From the NCBI GenBank assembly GCA_002104905.1, contig MCFE01000168.1, forward strand, positions 1-64,000: a DNA stretch of 64,000 nucleotides, given 5' to 3'. Below, one piece after another: positions 5,968 to 16,603 of this stretch. Under the pieces are notes generated by a model. It saw only the letters and a list, made by a program, of their open reading frames with translations, searched no databases and had not been told where the DNA came from. A program made the position numbers and the translations under genes. Source of the DNA: Basidiobolus meristosporus CBS 931.73. Lineage: Eukaryota; Fungi; Basidiobolomycota. The first letter of the stretch is position 1. Every line of letters begins with the position of its first letter.

Positions 5968-7849
5968 TCAGAAGTCGGTTGTTGGAGTGTCTACAAAGGG
6001 CGGCTATTTAGTGGAAATGCTTGGTGGGAGCGCAGCCAGTCTTACACTACCTTTTCTGGACTGAATGGTGTTGTTGACCATCCGATTCACGAATTCATCA
6101 AACGCCTCGACATACTCTTTCAAGGCAGTCTTCTTATAGTCTGTTACGGCTTGTTAAAAAGAGTTACAGCTAAACGGCAGCCAATCAATCACCATACCTG
6201 GAATCTTCCGCTCGTTATCTTGCACAGGGTTTAGTTGATCATAATCATTGATTTCTTGTATCAGTTGGGTGACAGTAGGGACTTCCAGTGGATTGAATTC
6301 CTCACAAGTACTGGGGTCGATGGGCACGCATACACGCCCTAATAGGTGTTAGCGATGTTCATGTGTATGAGTGGTGCTCAGATGGTGGTCACCTGTTTTT
6401 GGATGCACGCAGAAGGGGCTCTTCAACAAGTGATTCAGTTGAATGGATACATTTCCATCCAGTCTTGGGTAGCAGTACTGGAAAATGATGTCACGCTTAG
6501 CTAACTCCATTCCCTTGACCTTCTGCTTTGGTTTCTACAAGGGTGGTCATGCATGTATTAGCTAAGAAAACTCGCCAACAGGCTATCGCGGTTACCTTTG
6601 TATTACAGGCTGCTTCGATTTCTCTGGACAGATCATCCCAGCGTTCGGTGGATGGACGACCTGGGTTGTCTTGCCATTTCTGTGATAATTCATTACGTAC
6701 ACCTAGGTGCCAGTCAACAACTGCCAATGTAACGGTCCGATGGAAGTAGGTGTACCTTCGTCAGGGATGAGAGCCAGCACCTTCGAGTAATGCTCCTTTT
6801 CGCGGAGAACGTCTTGCTCTCTCAAAATCAAGCGAGGAAAGCTTTCTTTCAAGATGTCCAGGGACGCACTAATCACCCACATCAATGGTTTGCGACTGAT
6901 TTGAATCGGTTCATGGATACTTACACAAGCGCAGGATGCAAAGTCCCTGGTAAATTGACCTTTTTCGTTTGCTGGACGCCACCCTAGTTAATCCAAGCAA
7001 ATCAACGATCTACTCCCCAACACTAGCACACATGTCTCGTTAGGTACCTTGATCACTTCAATAAAACCTACGATGGCCTTGCGCCCTTCGTTGGTAAGCT
7101 TTCGTGCTCGTTCATCGCATACCCAGCAATGGACACCACGACGACCACTGTAAACCCATAGTCGATTCTCGAACCCAAAATCCTCTATACTTCAGGGTTA
7201 GCAAATAACTAACTATGGGTGTGCAACAACAAGAGAGTACCATATAATACCCGGTCTACGACCTTGATGGCAATGGTCATGAATTCCCAGCATTTCAAGC
7301 AAATATCTCCTCCCCTATAAAGCTCTGTTAGCATGAGGGGCCGAGGTGAAAGCAACAAAATACGTACGAGCAGCATGTACGAATCTCATCATAGTCAGTC
7401 ATATCTATATCAAACACTAGCTCCTTTTCGATAGGCTGGAAGGCTCCAGGCTTTATGGCTTTCTTGTCTTTGGGCTAAATACGAGAAAATTAGCAAAAGG
7501 TCCTGCATTTCTCACTCTGCTTTGGCTAAACTGACCTTTGCGGTATATACTGCCCCGATATCTATCTTTGAAGGGCAAAGCCTGAGCAGCTCCTCTTTGA
7601 ATTCTTTCCCGTCTTTAAAGGACAAATAACGAATATATGTATCATTTCCCAAAGTGAAACTAAACTCGCGGTTTGTGAAGGACTTCGTGGGAGCTGGAAG
7701 AAACGTTACGAGTTAATCGGGTGTCTTTTGCTTGATTTTAGTCCAGATATCTTACCATTATCATAGGTTAACCAACGAAAACATGACTTGTGTGGAAACA
7801 ATCTTTGGTAAAACTGGCGAAGTAGTATGGGGAGATTTCCTTCTTCCAT
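5968..7849 (-). CDS. PRI1: DNA primase small (catalytic) subunit
   Basis: Spliced exons give [88 protein letters not shown]; ends DTPTTDF*. Confidence 0.96.
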
Positions 7850-8135: not shown

Positions 8136-8767
8136 TTATTGAGTTGTTTCGTTTGAGGTATTCACTTCCTGCTTTGGTGGATTGCTAGTGTCGTTGCTGT
8201 CTACACTAGTACTCTCTAATTTGGGTTTTTTATCCTTGGTTTGTTGGTTCTTTTTCCGTTTTTGACGTTTGGCACGGTTCTTGGCGGTTTTTTCGTCTGC
8301 CTTTTGCTGAAGCTCTTCGCGTTTCTGATCGAACTCTATTTGATCTTGTTCCTAGATGGAATGGCATAAATGTGGGAGTTCTCTATTGTAAAGTGAAATA
8401 ACGCCTTTACCGCCTTCATTTCTTCCTCCATAATTTTGGTACGCGCGTATTCACGGCGTCGGTGAGCTCTATAGATGTGAAATTCTCCACTACCCGCACC
8501 AGCACTGGAACCTTAAATATGAACCGAGAAGATTCATTATTTTGACTGGCATTCGAGTAACAGGAGTGCTTATTTCGTACCTGGAACATTGCGAACGATC
8601 TCTTTTGGCGGCTTGAGTGTTTTCTGCTTTAGCTCTGGAATAACAACTGGTTTATCTATGCGTTCTAATAGCTTATCCAACTGCCTTTTCTGTAAGTCGT
8701 AAGGAGTTAGATTGTGCTTTTTTTGAGTCTCTCCTTCGTCGGAATGGTTTGGAGAATCTAGTGGCAT
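8136..8767 (-). CDS. PRKRIP1: PRKR-interacting protein 1 (spliceosome-associated) homolog
   Basis: KPPKEIVRNVP|GSSAGAGSGEFHIYRAHRRREYAR signature and a Lys/Arg-rich tail with KTAKNRAKRQKRKK. Confidence 0.9.
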
Positions 8768-9028: not shown

Positions 9029-9679
9029 CTAATTGTGCCAGATAAAGCTCACCCCATTTCCTGGTTTGAAGGTGGCATATTTCTTGATGTAAGGCCCTCC
9101 ATTGTAGTTGTAGTTACTTGTGTACACATTTCCATTGGCCTCAATCCTTTCAACAACAGCGACGTGTCCGGGACTGCCAGTTCCTTGAACTCCAGGCTGT
9201 ATTACTATAATACTAGGCTGCTTTGGTGTACCTGATACTGACCAACCAGGGGTGCTTTGTGCTTTGCTGGCCCAGACGCGAGCATCACCCCACCATTCAA
9301 TATGATGGCCAGTAAGCTGTGCATAGCGGGCATCAGCCCAGTCAGTACATTGACCATTTTTGAAGCGGAACTCCAGAGGCCCATTGGGTTGGGTGGTATA
9401 GCCGTTGTCGTTATCTGAGCTGTCGTTTCCATTCCCACCATAGCTATTATTTTGTTTAGAGTTTCGGTTCCCCTTTCTTGAGTTCTTGTTGTAGCTTGGT
9501 TTGTAGTTCTGGTTGGAATTCTGTGGATTGTAGCCCCAGGAATTCTTATAGGAATAGTACCGTGGCGCCAACTTGGGTTCCTCTTGTTGGATCTGACTCC
9601 CAGCGTCAGATATGCTGACCGGCAAGGCCCGAACCAATGCAACAGCGATCAAAAAGTATAGAACAGCGAATTTGTACAT
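9029..9679 (-). CDS. Secreted CHAP-domain protein (putative peptidoglycan amidase/peptidase), copy 1
   Basis: Intronless. Signal peptide, N/S/G/Q-rich linker, then CHAP motifs NGQCTDWA (Cys) and GHVAVVE (His), followed by TSNYNY. Confidence 0.9.
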   Translation of the reverse strand: MYKFAVLYFLIAVALVRALPVSISDAGSQIQQEEPKLAPRYYSYKNSWGYNPQNSNQNYKPSYNKNSRKGNRNSKQNNSYGGNGNDSSDNDNGYTTQPNGPLEFRFKNGQCTDWADARYAQLTGHHIEWWGDARVWASKAQSTPGWSVSGTPKQPSIIVIQPGVQGTGSPGHVAVVERIEANGNVYTSNYNYNGGPYIKKYATFKPGNGVSFIWHN

Positions 9680-10323
9680 GTTTCTTCCACTTTTCCAGAA
9701 AGTTGGTTTGTCCGGACCACATCTGACCAGCTTGCTTATATAAGAATGCTGGTTCTCATACCGTTGTAGCCTAGCCTTTCTAGATGGAATACAGTCTAGG
9801 GAACCTATTTTCGAGAAAAATTAATATGCAGTTACTACTCCAATTAGTAGTATTGCATATTGACAGCTGGGATGGCTGCATGGAAATCGAGTGCTTCTTA
9901 TTTTGCAGTTAATCTCTGCACCGTCCCTTGATTCTACCTAGAAATGCATCTCTCCCTCTGTTCCCTTGAAATGACATGATGTCAAGCACCCTGATAATCT
10001 TAGCTCTGGGATCTACAAGGTTGACGGTAACAGCGAATGGGTACAGCGTAGCCACACGGATGGCAGATAATAGTATTGTTTGTGAAGAATGTGCTATTCT
10101 AGATTAACAAAGCCATCGGAGAAAGAATCAAGACAACGGTTGGCAAGACTGGCGTACTTCTACTCGTTAGGTAACAGTTTCAAACCGGAAATTATCCCAG
10201 GGAAACAACAATGGGTCCACGTGATGTACTCGGAACATCCATATATGTCGTTGGTATGGAGCCTCCAACTGTTGGAGCCACCCCCTAATCCACTTTAACC
10301 TGTTAACCAGCACTAAGCCTTTG

Positions 10324-11582
10324 ATGAGGACCTTAGGGTATCTTTGGGTGCTGCTTTCGGTGCCGCTCGTGAGATCTCATCCGTATCACTCTGACACGGG
10401 TAGTTCGATTGATGTGGAGGATTTGACCGAGTACCTTAAATCCGACTTCGACGATAAGCCTAAATATGACCTCGATTCTGATAAACTTAAACATGACTTC
10501 GACTCTGATAAAGCCCTATATGACTTCAACTACAACCAACAACCACACGATCAACCAGTCGGGACGAATTGGTTCTTTCCCGAGCTGGACCCTCCCACGT
10601 ACGCTTACAACAAGGCTACTGAAACCTACCAGCGATGGGAATGTCTCAACTTCACCCAATCAGCGCTCCAGACCTGGGGAATAACCAAATTGCGATACGG
10701 TCGTGAAAACAAAGACGTTGTCCCTGACCCAAGTGACCCTACCACATCCGTATTGAGAGTGATTTACCCGAAAGGTAGTCGGAACCCTACCCATCACCCA
10801 CTTGGGGGAACTGGCTTTGATGCCAAGCCGATCTCGGTTGCTGATGGAATAGGCCAGACTGTTCGACTAAACTATCAGGTGTATTTCCCGGAGGATTTTG
10901 ATTTCGTGCATGGTAACAGGACGACTGACCTCCGCGCATACCCAGATCTTCGCTAACCCAACGTCCCCTGTCCAGGAGGCAAGCTGCCAGGGATTTATGG
11001 TGGTCACACCAGCTGCTCTGGTGGGAAATCCGCTCAAGATTGCTTTAGCGCCAGGTTTGTGGGTGTGGTTTCGCATTGGCAGGGAGATTCACTAATCCTC
11101 TCTCTAGATTCATGTGGCGTAAGGAAGGTTTGGGCGAGATTTACCTCTATGTACCAAAAACGGCCCTGCACCAACCTAGCTTCTGCAAGATTGCTCCTTT
11201 GTCGGTCTGCAACCAAAAGTATGGATTTTCCATCGGGCGTGGAAGTTTTCGGTTCAAGAAAGGGGCCTGGAATAAGGTCAGCGTCGCCGTTAGAATGAAC
11301 CAGGTCCCTTCAGAGCCTACTGGACAACTACGAGTATGGTACAATGACGAGATAGTCATTGACTATGACCAGATGGTTTGGAGGGTCAATGACACTGTAG
11401 GCTACGCAGGAATCGACTTCGAGACTTTCTTTGGGGGATCCAGTAACCGGTTTAACACCCCTATTGATACCTTCTCCCTCTTCAAAGACTTTCGGCTTGT
11501 GGTTGGCCAAGATCTGAATCAAACTCAGCTGGAGCCAAAGCCACCGACTGGCGATCAGTCTCTGGAATACGCTGAAGAATAG
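10324..11582 (+). CDS. Secreted polysaccharide lyase family 14 (PL14)-like protein, 2 introns
   Basis: Signal peptide; VLRVIYPKGS, YQVYFPEDFDFVH|GGKLPGIYGG (spliced), SARF|MWRKEGLGEIYLYVP, YGFSIGRGSFRF, FETFFGGS. These are typical PL14 motifs. Confidence 0.85.
10424..10521 (+). repeat. Degenerate ~27-bp (9-aa) acidic tandem repeat, about 3 copies, in the PL14 N-terminal region
   Basis: DFDDKPKY / DLDSDKLKH / DFDSDKALY / DF; the DNA units start gacttcgac, gacctcgat, gacttcgac. Confidence 0.6.
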
Positions 11583-11720
11583 ATTTTTGGACAATTTTGA
11601 TGTTTCTTGTATAAATATGCACATAGATCGAAAAGCTTTGACAAAACCAACATCCAATGATTCCATTTTATTCGATCTAATATTAATCGCAAGTGCTGGC
11701 GATCAACCTTGCTTTAAACA

Positions 11721-12386
11721 ATGAACTGGTATAGCCTAGCAAGAAGTAGAGCATCTTCCGTAGGCTTCACCAACCTTCCTTTTGCTGCAAGCACGCCGAG
11801 TAAATTGGTGGTCGTTCGCTGCTATACGGGGAAAGGTAGAAGGCGTTTGGTAGAGTGGACTCCTGAAGAGGATGCCAAGCTACTAGCCGGTATTCGAGAG
11901 CACGGCACCCAGTGGACAAAACTTGCGCAAGAATTTCCAAACAGAGGTCGTTTAGCTATTCGGTATCGTTATGTTTTCAATCTTAGGCCGGAGCTCAATG
12001 CACCCCCACCCGTAGCTACTCCCAGTCTCGCTATTGTCGACAAGGATGCACCTTTTCTGTGGACATCAGAAAGAGATGAGCTTCTTAAAGATCTGGTGAT
12101 TCGACATGGTCATCGCTGGCGTATGATTCAACGACTTGGGTTCCAAGGCCTAACGACTGGCAAGATACGTTATAGATACTCCTTGCTCTCGAATCCCGAC
12201 AAGGCGAAGGAGGTTTGGAATTTTGACCAAGACAAAGTACTTGTGGAAGCAATCAGGAAGCATGGATTTAATGCTTGGGACAAAGTAGCTAGTCAGCTAG
12301 CAACAAAGACTGACCAGGACTGTCGCACACGGTGGAGCGAATTGAAGAAGGAGGCGATCGCTTGGGAAAAGAAAGCACAAAAATAA
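11721..12386 (+). CDS. Intronless three-repeat Myb/SANT protein with N-terminal presequence-like extension
   Basis: Repeats WTPEEDAKLL..HGTQW..IRYRY, WTSERDELL..HGHRW..IRYRY, WNFDQDKVL..HGFNAW..CRTRW. Confidence 0.88.
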   Translation: MNWYSLARSRASSVGFTNLPFAASTPSKLVVVRCYTGKGRRRLVEWTPEEDAKLLAGIREHGTQWTKLAQEFPNRGRLAIRYRYVFNLRPELNAPPPVATPSLAIVDKDAPFLWTSERDELLKDLVIRHGHRWRMIQRLGFQGLTTGKIRYRYSLLSNPDKAKEVWNFDQDKVLVEAIRKHGFNAWDKVASQLATKTDQDCRTRWSELKKEAIAWEKKAQK

Positions 12387-12813
12387 TCTCAGTGGATCAC
12401 GCCAATTATTAGGGAGAAACCAATTGATAGAGAATATGCCGAAAAGGAGACCTTCAAGTTGCGAGGAATATATCAACGAAAAAGGAGACAATAAAGCAAT
12501 GAGGCTTGGTAGAAACAATGTCTTATAACTTCATATCCGTTTCTCGATCGTTGAACCACCACTGATGGATGCAATATTAGAGCAGCTCTGTTGATTTGGT
12601 AGTTTGGAACTATTAAACGAATCTCTTGGTTCCTGCATTGATTGGAGATAAGCTTGAATTGGGAGGGCAGTGCACCCTTGGTCGCAATAGACGATGCAAG
12701 GTTCCTTAGACTTCTGGATGTGTGTAGTGCATTCTCGTGGCAACCAGGACACTATATAGACCGCTAACCATCCACCGACGAACATCAGCTTTCTGGCAAA
12801 GTGACTACATATC

Positions 12814-13536
12814 ATGTATTTTAGTGTTATCATTGCTCTCTATCTTTCCGGCCTTGCTGTGCAAGCCTTACCGCTCAACATCAGATCCTCCGATATCGAT
12901 GCAGTGGCTGGATCAGGCATCAACCGTCGAAGCAGCTATTCGTATGTCCCAAACTACTCGCAAGGGAATAGCCAGTACCAGAATCAAAATCAAAGCCAAA
13001 ACCAGACCCAGAAGAAGCAAGGCAAACAATCTGATGGTCAAACAACTAACAGCAATAACAATGATGGATATGACACGAAGGGGACTTCCAACAGCAGCAG
13101 TAATAATGGATATGGTACGAAGGGGACTTCCAACTCCAAAGGTAAGAGCGACATTGGAAAGAGCCAAGGGTACAGCAATGCGGATGGAGGCCTAGAATTT
13201 CTATTTAAGAATGGGCAATGTACCGACTGGGCTGATGCACGCTATGCCCAACTCACCGGACACCACGTTGAGTGGAGAAGCGATGCCAAAAATTGGGCCA
13301 ACGATGCAAGATCAAATGGGTGGACTGTATCAAGCAAGCCTCAATCACCCTGTATTATAGTTTTACAACCTGGATCCCAAGGAATTGGTGCATCTGGTCA
13401 CGTGGCCGTGGTCGAGAGCATCAACTCGGATGGCAGCGTGTACACCAGCAACTACAACTTCAACGGCGGGCCCTATATCAAAGCGTACACGACCTTTAAG
13501 AGCGGCAACGGAGTTGATTATATTTGGCGCAATTAG
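12814..13536 (+). CDS. Secreted CHAP-domain protein, copy 2
   Basis: Intronless. Signal peptide, dibasic NRR site, Q/N/S/G linker. The CHAP domain is about 70% identical to copy 1 (82/117 by hand alignment). Confidence 0.9.
   Translation: MYFSVIIALYLSGLAVQALPLNIRSSDIDAVAGSGINRRSSYSYVPNYSQGNSQYQNQNQSQNQTQKKQGKQSDGQTTNSNNNDGYDTKGTSNSSSNNGYGTKGTSNSKGKSDIGKSQGYSNADGGLEFLFKNGQCTDWADARYAQLTGHHVEWRSDAKNWANDARSNGWTVSSKPQSPCIIVLQPGSQGIGASGHVAVVESINSDGSVYTSNYNFNGGPYIKAYTTFKSGNGVDYIWRN
13064..13134 (+). repeat. 42-bp (14-aa) direct repeat x2 in the CHAP2 linker
   Basis: atggatatgacacgaaggggacttccaac at 13064 and atggatatggtacgaaggggacttccaac at 13106 (GYDTKGTSN / GYGTKGTSN). Confidence 0.85.
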
Positions 13537-14540
13537 GAAATAAACCAGAGTTATCTATCATTGCAGTACCATTACAGTACCATTGCAGTTCTATTTAGAA
13601 CTGTCACTAGCATTAAGGTTAGGGGAAGGGGAAGGGCTAAGATTGGGCGCCAATATATACTATCTAGGAGGTCCAAGATTGGCCATCATTTAACACATTG
13701 TCGGTGTTACGAAAGTCTAGAGTGAGCAGCAACCAATTTGCCCAGGAGATTTGTTCACCAGCACTGTAACACAAGAACGCGAAACTGAATTAAACACCGT
13801 CTTTTTCTCTTTCAAGATTAGATGGCGCATTCCAACTGTATTCGATAAGTTTGGACATATTGTGAAAGTCTCGCCAATGGGCACTAGTCTCATCCCCCTC
13901 TCTCTCTTGAGTGAATTCTGAGTAGTTGCGTTTCAAGCAAACTTGTCGCGGTCTGGAATATTCCAGCTCAACTTGGACTCGGGTGGATTTCAACCATCAA
14001 CCTGATTTCTAAACAAACATGATGAGTTTAGTTACACGGTGAATCCACCCTTCTCAAGCATAATTAATACAGTCCCGTATTCCAACAATATCCTCAGATC
14101 GACAACTTGGGAATGACAAATTTAATAAAGTAGATGAACAATATTTCGTCGAGTGGAATGCATCGTTTGTATTCTAGGCTTGCGCATCCAAAGTTAAGAG
14201 CATTTGAGGCTCATTCAGCGTCTCACGCCGATGAAATACAAGACCGGATTCAAACACAGGACCTCGTGCTCTGGTTTCTGAGTTCTTCTCTCCTCTTCCA
14301 CAACTCGGCTTTCACACTAGGCCAAAGGAGAATATCAATAAACCGTAGGCACGCATTCAAAATTGAATTACTTGAAATCAAGTGGGACGATTTCTGAGCG
14401 TAAGCGAATAATGTTCTACAAAGTGTAGATGTGATATAGCTCTTCAATACAATGATAGACCACTATATGAAAGTACCAGAATAATGTCTCGTGGACAGAG
14501 GACTGCCTCGGCATTCAACTTAAATCACATGCAACTTCGA

Positions 14541-14548
14541 TATAAATA
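14541..14548 (+). promoter_or_regulatory. TATA box (TATAAATA) upstream of the small ORF at 14610
   Basis: Consensus TATA 62 bp upstream of the ATG. Confidence 0.5.
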
Positions 14549-14609
14549 GGCCTGTTCAGCAGCAGTCCCCCATCATACATCGCAACTAATCTATAACACT
14601 ACTCATCCC

Positions 14610-14876
14610 ATGGCAATGGCACATTTTCCAATCGAACCACACAAAAAAGCCAAAGACAGCATGCCACTAAAATCCCATCGCTCTGCCAATTACATCACTG
14701 CAGTGAACGCTCAAGCTACTCTGGTTCCTAAAGATTCCTGGAATCCATTCTCGGTGGCCGACATATTACGAAGTCCTCCATCTCGTCGCAAATCCTGTGA
14801 TTTCATAGTATCTGATTATATCTCCTTTCCCCATCATTATGAGGATGAGGAGGAATATCAGACACTAACTGCATAA
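14610..14876 (+). CDS. 88-aa hypothetical protein
   Basis: ATG ORF behind a TATA box in an otherwise gene-poor 3 kb; protein-like end RSPPSRRKS...DYISFPHHYEDEEEY. Confidence 0.5.
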   Translation: MAMAHFPIEPHKKAKDSMPLKSHRSANYITAVNAQATLVPKDSWNPFSVADILRSPPSRRKSCDFIVSDYISFPHHYEDEEEYQTLTA

Positions 14877-16603
14877 CCTTGCATTTGTCCACTACCGAAC
14901 CTAACTGACCTTGTCCACATAATCTACATTGTATTATATCAAGCATTCATTTAACGGCCGTGAATTTAGCATATGACATTGACATACACTTTGTCAGTTG
15001 GCAGTATAATCCTAACCACCACCACTATTACTTGGGCAGCACGCATAGAAAAATAACACTAGTAGCAGCACCATCACTATCTATCTATCACACACTGGCT
15101 ATCATCACATAATATAGAATCATTCACGGCTCAACACCGCTGCGAAGAAATCAGTCTTTTGACAAGCATGCTTTCTTTGCTGATAACCACATTACCCAAT
15201 ATAAACGTAATCCCACCTCTGAGTCACTGCTTATATCTTTACTTTAACGGAAGCTAGAGAACACCAATTACAGTGCAACACTGAGAACATCCATGAGGAG
15301 TTCCAGACATCTCGTCCAGTAGTATGCGATTCAAGTTCAACACAGTATGGCTTGAATGCATGATTGTGTGGAGATTATCTAAAAATGGAATATCGACATA
15401 TCATGAGGTAGCTCCAAGTGCGGCACCAACTCCATTCTATTCAGTGGAGTAGTTCGAAACAAGATTCGTCCATCGACCAATATCCTGAAGTACCATGGCA
15501 CATCACCTGACCAAGCGAGCCCTAGCCCTTATTGCTGATCAGCCCGAAAACACCCTACACTAAACCATATATGGGATCAGCTTCAAATAGGATATTTTAG
15601 ATCCAAAGTTCAAAGTGTAATTATGTGCAAATAGCTATCTACAGACACGAGCTCATCGTATAGGAGAAACTCGGATAATAATTCCCCAGAAGAGAAATCA
15701 GAAGTGAGGGGCTAGAAAAGGAAATATTAGCAGTTTAATCTTCGCATCATTATATTTCGTAAGAACATTCCTACATCCCTACACTTGAACCGATCCCAAA
15801 CGGAAACATCAGACAAATGAAGAAAATCCAACCAAACACCATATTTTCAAACCAATAGCCTACGACGCGCTGGTGTTCATTTGATTTGTATCGAGATTAT
15901 CAATTTGTCCCCCAAACCAAATTGGCTGCCAACAGAAGTAGCCCCAGAATTGCGCACATTTTCTTGGCCAATCGAGTTTTTTTGGAGCACAAGCTTACTT
16001 TTGTATCTCCCTCAAAGCAAGGTCAACTTAGGGTGAACAACTTGAAGTGCACCTGGTATTCATCTCGTCAAGTATGGAGGATATTGGTCACTCACAAGCC
16101 ACACCACACCGGTACACATCCACCTCAATTCATGAATCTGCACTGGCAAATAGTTGTGCCTGTATGAGGTCCTTCGATTCCCATATTTAAGTGAATCCAG
16201 AGTATTTCCTGCTGTGTTTCCATATCGAATATGTCCCAAAAAATCCGCCATAATAGCAGGACCATTGCCGTATATGGAAGGGGGATTTGACACCGGTCGG
16301 GTATCATGAAGATAGCCCAGGAGATTGACTCTAAATTCTTTTCGGTAAATACCCACGTAAAAGGTTTCAAGCGAGCTGGACGCCGTATAAAAGATCGCGA
16401 GCGCAGACGAGATTTGTCCATTCCTTACAAATCGAATTATTCCTTATCTTCCAGTTTCCCCAATCTAATTCAATCGCACTAGTACAGTGGATTTCTTTTT
16501 CATTCCCTTGAAATTGAGGAGCTTCTCTGTATACATTTTACCCTGTGCTGATAACCTCCTTGAACTAATCGAAAAATATTAACCCCGTGTTAACTCCCTC
16601 ATA

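Follow-up and report, generated by a model that had tools for sequence, protein, structure and literature searches.

Four genes are neighbours in the fungus Basidiobolus meristosporus CBS 931.73: two for CHAP (cysteine, histidine-dependent amidohydrolase/peptidase) enzymes, one for a PL14 lyase and one for a Myb protein. They raise the question of whether they act as one functional unit or share only a history of lying side by side. Basidiobolus is a fungus of gut, soil and dung, and a first-pass annotation of this locus had proposed a co-regulated bacteriolytic module. Our comparisons neither supported nor refuted this proposal: the CHAP and PL14 genes have separate origins, no recurrent pairing and different promoters, while the flanking genes are equally conserved. 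Rather, the four genes are probably neighbours by history and not a single functional unit, and the locus most likely arose when an acquired gene for a secreted peptidoglycan hydrolase was duplicated locally, so that the pair now straddles two resident genes.

Gene content of the locus

The window, i.e., the whole 64-kb stretch of DNA analysed, matches contig MCFE01000168.1. The four genes were confirmed in it, with positions and orientations as proposed before, and Pfam matches bear out their identities:

5968-7849: flanking DNA primase small subunit gene (PRI1), Pfam label of the called gene
8136-8767: flanking DUF1168/PRKRIP1-like gene, Pfam label of the called gene
9029..9679, minus strand: CHAP1, intronless, 216 aa, Pfam CHAP E 3e-15, database protein P0007
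10324..10912, plus strand: PL14 exon 1, Pfam PF21294 E 1e-10
10976..11054, plus strand: PL14 exon 2, splice sites read from the sequence, same junctions in NCBI model P0121
11108..11582, plus strand: PL14 exon 3, remainder of the domain and stop codon, Pfam PF21294 E 2.5e-39
11721..12386, plus strand: Myb gene, 221 aa, three Myb repeats, Pfam Myb_DNA-binding E 2.7e-31 in three stretches
12814..13536, plus strand: CHAP2, intronless, 240 aa, Pfam CHAP E 1e-16
16604 (start): flanking FHA-RING (DMA1-like) gene, 3.07 kb past CHAP2, Pfam label

CHAP1 and CHAP2 are oriented outwards and enclose the PL14 and Myb genes; no CHAP or PL14 gene besides CHAP1, CHAP2 and the single PL14 was found elsewhere in the 64-kb window. 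The divergent intergenic region between CHAP1 and PL14 measures 644 bp (9680-10323), close to the ~640 bp reported earlier, and the Pfam labels agree with the housekeeping flanks described there (PRI1 and PRKRIP1 on one side, DMA1 past ~3 kb on the other). The earlier claim that the CHAPs and PL14 are secreted also fits the starts of CHAP1, CHAP2 and PL14, in which a short hydrophobic stretch is followed by a small-x-small site (VRA/LP, VQA/LP and VRS/HP); these signal-peptide-like starts were read by eye, without a dedicated predictor. The Myb protein has no signal peptide and is fast-evolving, with only 34% identity to its syntenic orthologue in the sister species B. ranarum.

The PL14 gene consists of three exons (10324-11582, 380 codons). 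Its two GT..AG introns measure 63 and 53 nt, have the branch sites CTAAC/CTAAT and recur in the partial NCBI model P0121. Exon 1 encodes the signal-peptide-like start, an acidic D/K-rich linker and the beginning of the PL14 domain, and the B. ranarum orthologue P0142, which is full-length, keeps this N-terminus (..SHPYHSD). Exon 2 encodes GGKLPGIYGG...CSGGKSAQDCFSA, containing the catalytic-region Lys and a Cys..Gly..Cys loop (as seen in an alignment with 5GMT, an alginate lyase of Aplysia), and exon 3 is 78% identical to its B. ranarum counterpart.

Separate origins of the CHAP and PL14 genes

The best 120 relatives of CHAP2 comprised 30 Basidiobolus sequences, the remainder being bacterial, and the named bacteria among them were all Ktedonobacteria/Chloroflexota (domain identity 55-62%). 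When 185,579 prokaryotic species genomes were scanned, 76 CHAP loci emerged, and in nearly every case the title named Ktedonobacteria or Chloroflexota; no PL14 gene was found within 3 kb of these loci. One of the 76 came from a 'proteobacterium' MAG. In a profile search of 1.84 billion representatives, only Basidiobolus clusters scored above the bacterial range. The 30 fungal CHAPs formed one clade against 90 bacterial sequences (SH-aLRT 99), and this clade contained several B. meristosporus/B. ranarum orthologue pairs. The Basidiobolus family comprises ~35 genes. The CHAP genes of this locus have no introns, lie amid intron-bearing fungal genes and are present in two independent assemblies. 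Because the fungal sequences form one clade with Ktedonobacteria as nearest relatives, the comparisons indicate that the Basidiobolus CHAPs derive from a bacterial transfer followed by expansion to this number.

The list of PL14 relatives began with B. ranarum (69%), followed by chytrids, Olpidium, Mucoromycota and Agaricomycetes; bacteria came only far down. In the tree, the PL14s of Basidiobolus, including this one, grouped together within the fungal radiation. Judged by these relatives and by its two spliceosomal introns, PL14 belongs to an old fungal family (chytrids, Mucoromycota, mushrooms).

Linkage within and beyond the locus

In an antibacterial or bacterivory module, PL14 would strip a bacterial polyuronate capsule or biofilm, such as alginate, which is mannuronate-rich in bacteria, and thereby expose the wall to the CHAPs; the Myb protein may then be a local regulator. 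We consider this unlikely. It fits the signal-peptide-like starts on all three enzymes, but the differing origins of CHAP and PL14 (bacterial transfer versus old fungal family) speak against it. The polymannuronate-specific lyase of Aplysia is a closer match to PL14 (E 1e-34) than the glucuronan lyase of a chlorovirus (E 1e-13), the Cys..Gly..Cys loop that confers polymannuronate preference on the Aplysia enzyme is kept (PMC8618178), and the fungus lives among gut bacteria (PMC10964425); however, the PL14 features are the same in chytrids, Mucoromycota and mushrooms, which have no CHAP. No fungal PL14 of measured activity was found in the literature searched.

Synteny had been named beforehand as a check, and the genes do stay linked in B. 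ranarum, with orientation kept, in the order PRI1-DUF1168-CHAPx3-PL14a-PL14b-Myb-CHAPx2-...-DMA1-KARI. The CHAP1 co-orthologues form a three-gene tandem row and the CHAP2 orthologue, P0002, is syntenic. Both families are amplified there (five CHAP and two PL14 genes), as joint selection would likewise predict. That the linkage outlived a species split long enough to saturate synonymous sites also counts against a purely historical explanation. Nevertheless, the housekeeping flanks are kept as well as the four focal genes, so the conserved CHAP-PL14 linkage carries no extra weight.

The pairing is also not repeated at five other loci: two other CHAP arrays (of six and two genes) contain no PL14, and no CHAP lies beside three other PL14 loci (two same-genome paralogues and the closest non-Basidiobolus PL14), which have housekeeping neighbours. 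By a rough estimate (~12 CHAP loci, at least 3 PL14 genes, ~16,000 genes), CHAP-PL14 adjacency alone had a prior chance of ~1%, a figure weakened by the fact that the pairing was picked afterwards from many possible secreted partners.

Promoter elements of the CHAP and PL14 genes

The 644-bp region common to CHAP1 and PL14 would also suit a module, since divergently transcribed gene pairs are often co-expressed. The elements in this region and upstream of CHAP2 were as follows:

9688..9703, minus strand: CHAP1 leader element ACTTTCTGGAAAAGTG, 9-24 nt before the start codon
9735..9742, minus strand: CHAP1 TATA box TATATAAG, ~60 nt upstream of the ATG, read from the sequence
9794..9806, minus strand: second shared element of CHAP1 AGGTTCCCTAGAC, ~115-127 nt upstream of the ATG
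10216..10227, plus strand: conserved PL14-proximal element TCCACGTGATGT with a CACGTG E-box, ~100 nt before the start codon of PL14
12699..12711, plus strand: CHAP2 copy of the shared element AGGTTCCTTAGAC
12753..12759, plus strand: CHAP2 TATA box (TATATAG), ~60 nt upstream of the ATG, read from the sequence
12788..12803, plus strand: leader element of CHAP2 GCTTTCTGGCAAAGTG, 11-26 nt before the start codon

CHAP1 and CHAP2 thus have a three-part layout in common (an element at ~-115, TATA at ~-60 and the leader at ~-10 to -25), and the element AGGTTCCCTAGAC of CHAP1 has an exact counterpart upstream of CHAP2. The CHAP1 leader matches its B. ranarum orthologue at 22/22 positions despite saturated synonymous sites, and that of CHAP2 at 18/18; within the 193 kb of Basidiobolus DNA searched, the leader is confined to the promoters of this locus's CHAP genes in both species. 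CHAP1 and CHAP2 are therefore probably regulated alike through these common promoter and leader elements. In contrast, the conserved CHAP elements are absent from the PL14-proximal promoter, which carries its own E-box; this element is 12/12 identical before B. ranarum PL14a and absent from the rest of the 193 kb. Overall, all tests able to tell a functional cluster from plain synteny went against the cluster.

Predicted function of the CHAP proteins

CHAP1 and CHAP2 share 48% identity over their full length. In CHAP1, an N/S/G/Q-rich linker joins the signal-peptide-like start to the C-terminal CHAP (peptidase C51) domain. CHAP2 begins in a similar way; its linker is disordered, rich in N/S/G/K and repeat-bearing, and its CHAP domain occupies residues 122-240. 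In the AlphaFold model of CHAP2, a helix at the N-terminus (3-13) precedes the disordered linker, and the domain has pLDDT ~85-97. The 30 fungal and 90 bacterial CHAPs vary little or not at all at Cys136, His196, Glu201 and Asn215, and have Asn or Asp at position 213. Between B. meristosporus and B. ranarum, dN of the domain is 0.07-0.12 (0.07 for CHAP1) with dS saturated. The nearest solved structures, by sequence and by fold, are staphylococcal and phage CHAP peptidoglycan hydrolases, and such hydrolases are the top Foldseek matches of the CHAP2 model. Given the intact catalytic residues, the strong purifying selection and this fold, an antibacterial or bacteria-digesting role is plausible for the CHAP enzymes; this part of the first-pass annotation stood, whereas a joint cluster with PL14 was not supported.

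Less likely still, both enzymes would target the fungus's own surface or other fungi, with PL14 acting on wall glucuronan and CHAP on a non-peptidoglycan amide or peptide. Wall glucuronan remodelling is a role proposed for Mucoromycota PL14s, and one PL14 paralogue adjoins a Kre9/KNH-type wall-synthesis gene. CHAP domains also include non-peptidoglycan amidases such as glutathionylspermidine amidase, a distant fold match here, but this match is weak (E ~0.015, 10-13% identity) and the closest structures are all peptidoglycan hydrolases. Moreover, the 55-62% domain identity is to bacterial wall-associated homologues, and ~35 secreted copies better suit an external, variable target than self-remodelling. 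Bacterial contamination or an assembly artefact, although the closest relatives are bacterial and the genes intronless, can practically be dismissed, as the CHAPs have intron-bearing fungal genes on both sides within a 145-kb contig, are found at the equivalent syntenic place in the other species' independent assembly, show eukaryote-type TATA promoters and signal peptides (read from sequence), resemble their neighbours in G+C content and form a fungus-specific clade with orthologue pairs.

A possible history of the locus

If the four genes are neighbours by history, a Basidiobolus ancestor would have gained a CHAP gene from a Ktedonobacteria-like soil bacterium. The C-terminal catalytic domain would have been retained, and a eukaryotic signal peptide with a disordered linker would have taken the place of the bacterial N-terminal part. 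The family would then have multiplied to its present size, chiefly in tandem or inverted arrays, and a local duplication including ~130 bp of promoter could have placed copies on either side of PL14 and Myb. Once secreted, CHAP1 and CHAP2 may cleave bacterial peptidoglycan, cutting either the amide bond or a bond within the stem or cross-bridge peptide, which would kill or digest bacteria around this gut- and dung-dwelling fungus. PL14 is predicted to be a secreted beta-elimination lyase acting on polyuronate, either of the mannuronan/alginate type or glucuronan; its task would not differ from that in the many fungi with PL14 but without CHAP, and it would be driven by its own promoter.

Comparison with known systems

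Like fungal co-regulated clusters (secondary-metabolite or catabolic), the locus has linked secreted/interaction genes, an internal transcription-factor gene and one divergent promoter; unlike them, it has no shared pathway, common origin, recurring gene combination or promoter motif common to the CHAP and PL14 families. PL14 shares PF21294 membership with AkAly30 (5GMT, polymannuronate-specific alginate lyase of Aplysia kurodai) and vAL-1 (3A0N, chlorovirus glucuronan lyase). The alignment shows that the GGKLPG Lys, S-x-R and Y-x-Y of the active-site strands are conserved, along with the Cys..Gly..Cys loop of AkAly30. PL14 differs from both enzymes in being fungal and in its extra acidic N-terminal linker.

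The CHAPs have the same fold and aligned Cys-His catalytic core as staphylococcal SsaA-type and phage CHAPs (PDB 2K3A, 2LRJ, 5T1Q, 9EUM; LysK CHAPK 4CSH), with sequence E of 2e-13 to 5e-4, Foldseek probability 1.0 and rmsd ~2 A over ~111 residues; however, identity is 28-35%, and the fungal proteins carry a disordered linker instead of an SH3b/LysM wall-binding module.

As in Basidiobolus, the CHAP genes of the oomycete Saprolegnia parasitica (7 genes) were judged bacterial-acquired, predicted to be secreted and repeatedly duplicated (Jiang et al. 2013, PMC3681718), with no PL14 neighbour reported there. Since the recipients are unrelated, two independent acquisitions are probable; Basidiobolus has a family ~5x larger, for which a donor group can be named.

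The CHAP superfamily is related to the NlpC/P60 superfamily. Multi-copy NlpC/P60 peptidoglycan hydrolases of bacterial origin, in a eukaryote living among bacteria, keep their activity and help to outcompete bacteria (2018, PMC6299479). Basidiobolus likewise lives among bacteria and has a multi-copy, bacterial-origin family of papain-like peptidoglycan hydrolases, but here the family is CHAP, the recipient a fungus, the donor Ktedonobacteria-like and the activity predicted from sequence, and the proteins bear classical signal peptides and low-complexity linkers.

Four neighbouring genes and their models

Two outward-pointing CHAP genes (CHAP1 and CHAP2) enclosing a PL14 lyase gene and a Myb gene had been proposed in the first-pass annotation, and an ORF list combined with a Pfam scan recovered all four at the positions and in the orientations claimed. 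The four genes all lie within 4.5 kb. The window covers the initial 64 kb of a Basidiobolus meristosporus CBS 931.73 contig, and its coordinates coincide with those of the record (MCFE01000168.1, GCA_002104905.1).

Genes of the locus (window coordinates)
9029-9679, minus strand: CHAP1, 216 aa
10324-10912, 10976-11054 and 11108-11582, plus strand: PL14 gene, three exons, 380 codons
11721-12386, plus strand: Myb gene, 221 aa, three Myb repeats
12814-13536, plus strand: CHAP2, 240 aa

The flanking genes named earlier, encoding the DNA primase small subunit (PRI1), a DUF1168 (PRKRIP1-like) protein and an FHA-RING (DMA1-like) protein, were found as well, and the divergent promoter region said to be shared by CHAP1 and PL14 was located and measures 644 bp. 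The DMA1-like gene lies 3.07 kb to the right of CHAP2. The interval between them had been called gene-poor; the gap itself stands, but it holds an 88-aa ORF with a syntenic homologue. This ORF (14610-14876, plus strand) belongs to no Pfam family; its counterpart at the matching position in B. ranarum (locus L001, 4488-4736), with 57% identity, is annotated as a gene of 82 aa.

The two PL14 introns (63 and 53 nt) are of the GT..AG type with branch sites CTAAC/CTAAT, and the splice junctions of the three-exon model are exactly those of P0121, the partial NCBI protein model of this gene (265 aa). The longer N- and C-termini of our model are backed by the full-length B. ranarum orthologue. The public gene model (K493DRAFT_147411, labelled 'partial', 265 aa) spans 10579-11489, as against 10324-11582 here, and leaves out the final 31 residues as well as the signal peptide and the acidic linker; a length of 380 aa is backed by both the open frame and the orthologue in B. 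ranarum. Read by eye, the N-termini of the CHAP1, CHAP2 and PL14 proteins consist of 13-14 residues of hydrophobic sequence, after which comes VRA|LP, VQA|LP or VRS|HP.

In the Myb protein, PF00249 matched three stretches in tandem (E 2.7e-31). All of its nearest clusters in the Atlas are Myb families, but generic ones with scores of at most 0.83, so that the protein could not be placed in an orthologue group. The N-terminus of this protein (~40 residues) is R/S/A-rich, contains no acidic residues and resembles a presequence.

Predicted fold and activity of the CHAP proteins

The CHAP profile (PF05257, peptidase C51; gathering cut-off 26 bits) scored 56.9 bits against CHAP1 and 61.7 bits against CHAP2, two proteins that share 48% identity overall and ~70% in the C-terminal catalytic domain. 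Across 30 fungal and 90 bacterial CHAP sequences, Cys136, His196 and Asn215 are invariant, Glu201 is nearly so, and residue 213 is either Asn or Asp; in alignments, the catalytic Cys and His coincide with their counterparts in 2K3A and 2LRJ. Between the two Basidiobolus species, the CHAP domain shows a dN of 0.07-0.12 with saturated dS. In the AlphaFold2 model, the domain (residues 122-240) has a pLDDT of ~85-97, while the linker (27-121) is disordered with values below 50. The top Foldseek PDB matches of this model were all CHAP domains, in line with a papain-like alpha+beta fold, and 5T1Q superposed with an rmsd of 1.9 A over 111 residues. The closest solved structures, by fold and by sequence (2K3A, E 2e-13; 2LRJ; 5T1Q), are staphylococcal and phage CHAP peptidoglycan hydrolases. 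The bacterial homologues are ~320 aa long with a C-terminal CHAP domain; in the fungal proteins, a signal peptide and a low-complexity N/S/G/Q/K-rich linker take the place of the bacterial N-terminal part. Given the conserved catalytic residues, the low dN against saturated dS and the peptidoglycan hydrolases as closest structures, the CHAP enzymes look active, and they probably attack bacterial walls.

Origin of the CHAP family

The best 120 relatives of CHAP2 comprised 30 sequences from Basidiobolus (B. meristosporus and B. ranarum), the remainder being bacterial or metagenomic; every named bacterium among these 120 belongs to the Ktedonobacteria/Chloroflexota, with a domain identity of 55-62%. 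When one genome of each prokaryotic species was scanned with patterns derived from this same CHAP subfamily, 76 CHAP loci were returned, nearly all titled Ktedonobacteria or unclassified Chloroflexota (genera including Thermogemmatispora, Dictyobacter, Ktedonobacter, Tengunoibacter and Thermosporothrix) and one labelled 'uncultured proteobacterium'. In a maximum-likelihood domain tree, the 30 fungal CHAPs formed one group against the 90 bacterial sequences (SH-aLRT 99); the tree is unrooted, and a single fungal clade presumes a root among the bacteria. This clade contains several B. meristosporus/B. ranarum orthologue pairs, indicating that most duplications are older than the species split. 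The family amounts to ~35 genes, as the sum of the members of the B. meristosporus clusters. When a profile of the 30 fungal CHAPs was run against 1.84 billion representatives, only Basidiobolus clusters exceeded the bacterial range, and two short matches were bacterial and phage-borne. Entomophthorales were absent both from the best 120 relatives of CHAP2 and from the clusters above the bacterial range in this profile search, whose best 150 matches likewise included no protein bearing the fungal sequence signature. A 166-aa member of the subfamily (L088, 7800-8300, on a Logan SRR19971020 contig; E ~5e-32 against the profile of the fungal CHAPs) has Rad52, DnaB and DNA polymerase A as neighbours in a phage-like row of genes, so the CHAP subfamily also travels on phages.

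The nearest outside relatives are bacterial, the recipients form one clade, and the genes are integrated in the chromosome, where fungal genes that carry introns border them in the assemblies of both species. Judged by these comparisons, the Basidiobolus CHAP genes are of bacterial ancestry and were acquired by horizontal transfer. Bacterial contamination is excluded, as the neighbours are fungal, the promoters are of the TATA type and the genes occupy one and the same position in two assemblies. Neither CHAP nor peptidoglycan is mentioned in the text of Tabima et al. 2020, which reports 806 HGT candidates (PMC7466969), and our literature search did not find the CHAP family named in Basidiobolus.

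Relatives and possible substrates of PL14

The PL14 exons were searched one by one, and later PL14 searches were run with P0121. The exon 1 and exon 3 pieces scored 41.9 and 135.6 bits, respectively, against PF21294 (gathering cut-off 27 bits), covering profile positions 3-61 and 90-215, with exon 2 filling the segment between. The best relative was the syntenic B. ranarum gene (69%), followed by genes of chytrids (Batrachochytrium, Powellomyces, Spizellomyces and others), Olpidium, Mucoromycota (Spinellus, Umbelopsis) and Agaricomycetes; bacteria appeared only at the bottom of the list. In the tree, the window gene grouped with B. ranarum and a B. meristosporus paralogue within the fungal radiation. 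Together with the two spliceosomal introns, these relatives and this placement mark PL14, on such a comparison, as an old resident fungal gene. A joint transfer of PL14 with CHAP was rejected: PL14 groups with fungi, and no PL14 was found near bacterial CHAP genes in 442 kb around 76 genes, which argues that the two families were not transferred together.

The similarity of PL14 to the polymannuronate-specific Aplysia lyase 5GMT (E 1e-34), which suggests a beta-jelly roll fold, exceeds its similarity to vAL-1, a chlorovirus lyase acting on glucuronan (E 1e-13). When PL14 was aligned to 5GMT and 3A0N, GGKLPG, CFSARFMW and EIYLYVP matched the corresponding active-site strands, so that the active-site residues of AkAly30 (5GMT) and vAL-1 (3A0N), namely Lys, Ser, Arg, Tyr and Tyr, are conserved. 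The Cys..Gly..Cys loop of the Aplysia enzyme is kept in the window PL14 and, like the active-site strands, is also present in chytrid and Mucoromycota PL14s. In the Aplysia lyase, this loop tunes specificity (PMC8618178). A biochemically characterised fungal PL14 was not found in the literature searched, and a recent review makes the case that the PL14s of fungi have glucuronan of the fungal wall as their substrate (PMC11325530). One PL14 paralogue of B. meristosporus adjoins a Kre9/KNH-type gene for beta-1,6-glucan synthesis (L007, 7375-8913 and 10001-10666; MCFE01000762), which weakly suggests that this paralogue serves a function related to the wall.

Promoter elements

CHAP1 and CHAP2 have a common promoter layout, consisting of AGGTTCCYTAGAC at about -105 to -127, a TATA box at ~-60 and a leader element at ~-10 to -25. 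The leader (ACTTTCTGGAAAAGTG; consensus ACTTTCTGG(A/C)AAAGTG) was found only before the CHAP genes of this locus, at the following positions.

Occurrences of the leader element
9682-9703, minus strand, window
12788-12806, plus strand, window
7504-7519, locus L003
9053-9068, locus L003
1662-1677, locus L001

The two window copies are identical to those of their B. ranarum orthologues at 22/22 and 18/18 positions, despite saturated synonymous sites. Located between the TATA box and the ATG, the leader is probably part of the 5' UTR. Its sequence is in part a palindrome (ACTTT..AAAGT) and includes TTCnnGAA. As judged from the promoters, the common layout and the leader show that the flanking CHAP copies arose by a local duplication including the promoter, and that CHAP1 and CHAP2 are probably regulated alike.

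The conserved element proximal to PL14, TCCACGTGATGT, which contains the CACGTG box, lies ~100 nt upstream of the gene and differs from the CHAP elements. Shared cis-elements were common to CHAP1 and CHAP2 only. By eye, none of the conserved promoter elements of CHAP or PL14 showed a sequence resembling a Myb site. A scan for sigma-70 promoters and terminators yielded no signal beyond chance, in keeping with a eukaryotic sequence.

Conservation and recurrence of the gene arrangement

In B. ranarum, the syntenic locus is divided between two contigs whose junction falls within a PL14 gene. The genes run in the order EF-hand, a 129-aa gene, PRI1, DUF1168, three CHAP genes (minus strand), two PL14 genes (PL14a and PL14b), Myb, two CHAP genes, a small ORF, a methyltransferase gene, DMA1 and KARI. 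Synteny in relatives had been put forward as a check on the proposed cluster; CHAP-PL14 linkage is indeed kept in B. ranarum, as is the entire PRI1-KARI block. Because the housekeeping flanks are equally conserved, the conserved linkage says nothing specific; saturated synonymous sites indicate that it is old. PL14a and PL14b, with 54% identity in their N-terminal halves, are an old duplicate pair. The Myb protein shows 34% identity to its syntenic orthologue, compared with 69% for PL14, 82-87% for the CHAP domains and ~90% for DMA1. Between CHAP2 and DMA1, B. ranarum has two genes (L001 5428-6396) that are without a counterpart in the 3-kb gap of the window (13537-16603), one for a methyltransferase-like protein of 322 aa and the other for a second CHAP protein, of 148 aa, which implies gain or loss since the split.

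The CHAP-PL14 pairing did not recur at any of five other loci (L004, L005, L006, L007 and L084). Two CHAP arrays at other places in the genome, one of six genes (L004) and one of two (L005), contain no PL14, and two PL14 paralogues of the same genome and the closest non-Basidiobolus PL14 (L006, L007 and L084) lie among housekeeping genes with no CHAP nearby. A gene for an 8,462-residue protein with no Pfam match lies directly upstream of the two-gene array (L005 1-7338, MCFE01000126). With no recurrence of the pairing at these five loci and no promoter elements common to CHAP and PL14, the co-regulated functional cluster proposed at the outset looks unlikely.

Discussion

The arrangement is likely to reflect a locally duplicated pair of acquired, secreted CHAP hydrolase genes that straddles a resident PL14 gene and a fast-evolving Myb gene, with PL14 probably doing the same job as in many CHAP-less fungi. 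A co-regulated antibacterial or bacterivory cluster of secreted CHAP and PL14 seems improbable to us, even though CHAP1 and PL14 diverge from one 644-bp region, both families are amplified at this locus in B. ranarum and the window PL14 carries an AkAly30-like specificity loop. The prior chance of CHAP-PL14 adjacency alone is also near 1%, a rough estimate based on ~12 CHAP loci, at least 3 PL14 genes and ~16,000 genes, the last figure being derived from '806 genes = 5%' (PMC7466969). The pairing, however, was noticed after the fact, and the housekeeping flanks are conserved, the two families have separate origins and different promoter elements, and the pairing is non-recurrent. Several per cent of fungal genes encode secreted proteins, so that, given ~48 neighbour slots around the CHAP loci, a few secreted neighbours are expected by chance.

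It is at least as doubtful that the locus forms an antibacterial 'digestive island', in which a recruited PL14 would strip mannuronate-rich bacterial exopolysaccharide to let the flanking CHAPs reach the peptidoglycan, the Myb protein would serve as local regulator, and both enzyme families would have been co-amplified in B. ranarum under joint selection. If true, this would be a fungal anti-bacterial gene cluster built from one native and one horizontally acquired component; any cooperation of PL14 with CHAP would make a rare fungal cluster of a native and an acquired gene directed against bacteria.

With a duplicated CHAP pair around a resident PL14 as the preferred reading, the value of this analysis is mostly corrective, in that it shows how a functional cluster can be told apart from neighbours by descent. 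Basidiobolus lives in amphibian and reptile guts, where it is thought to shape the bacterial community, and its interaction with bacteria has so far been discussed only via bacteria-derived secondary-metabolite genes (PMC7466969, PMC10964425). The ~35 secreted, bacteria-derived genes for putative peptidoglycan hydrolases would add an enzymatic arm to this gut interaction. The nearest known parallels are the NlpC/P60 hydrolases that Trichomonas vaginalis gained by lateral transfer (PMC6299479) and the secreted and expanded CHAP family of Saprolegnia parasitica (PMC3681718).
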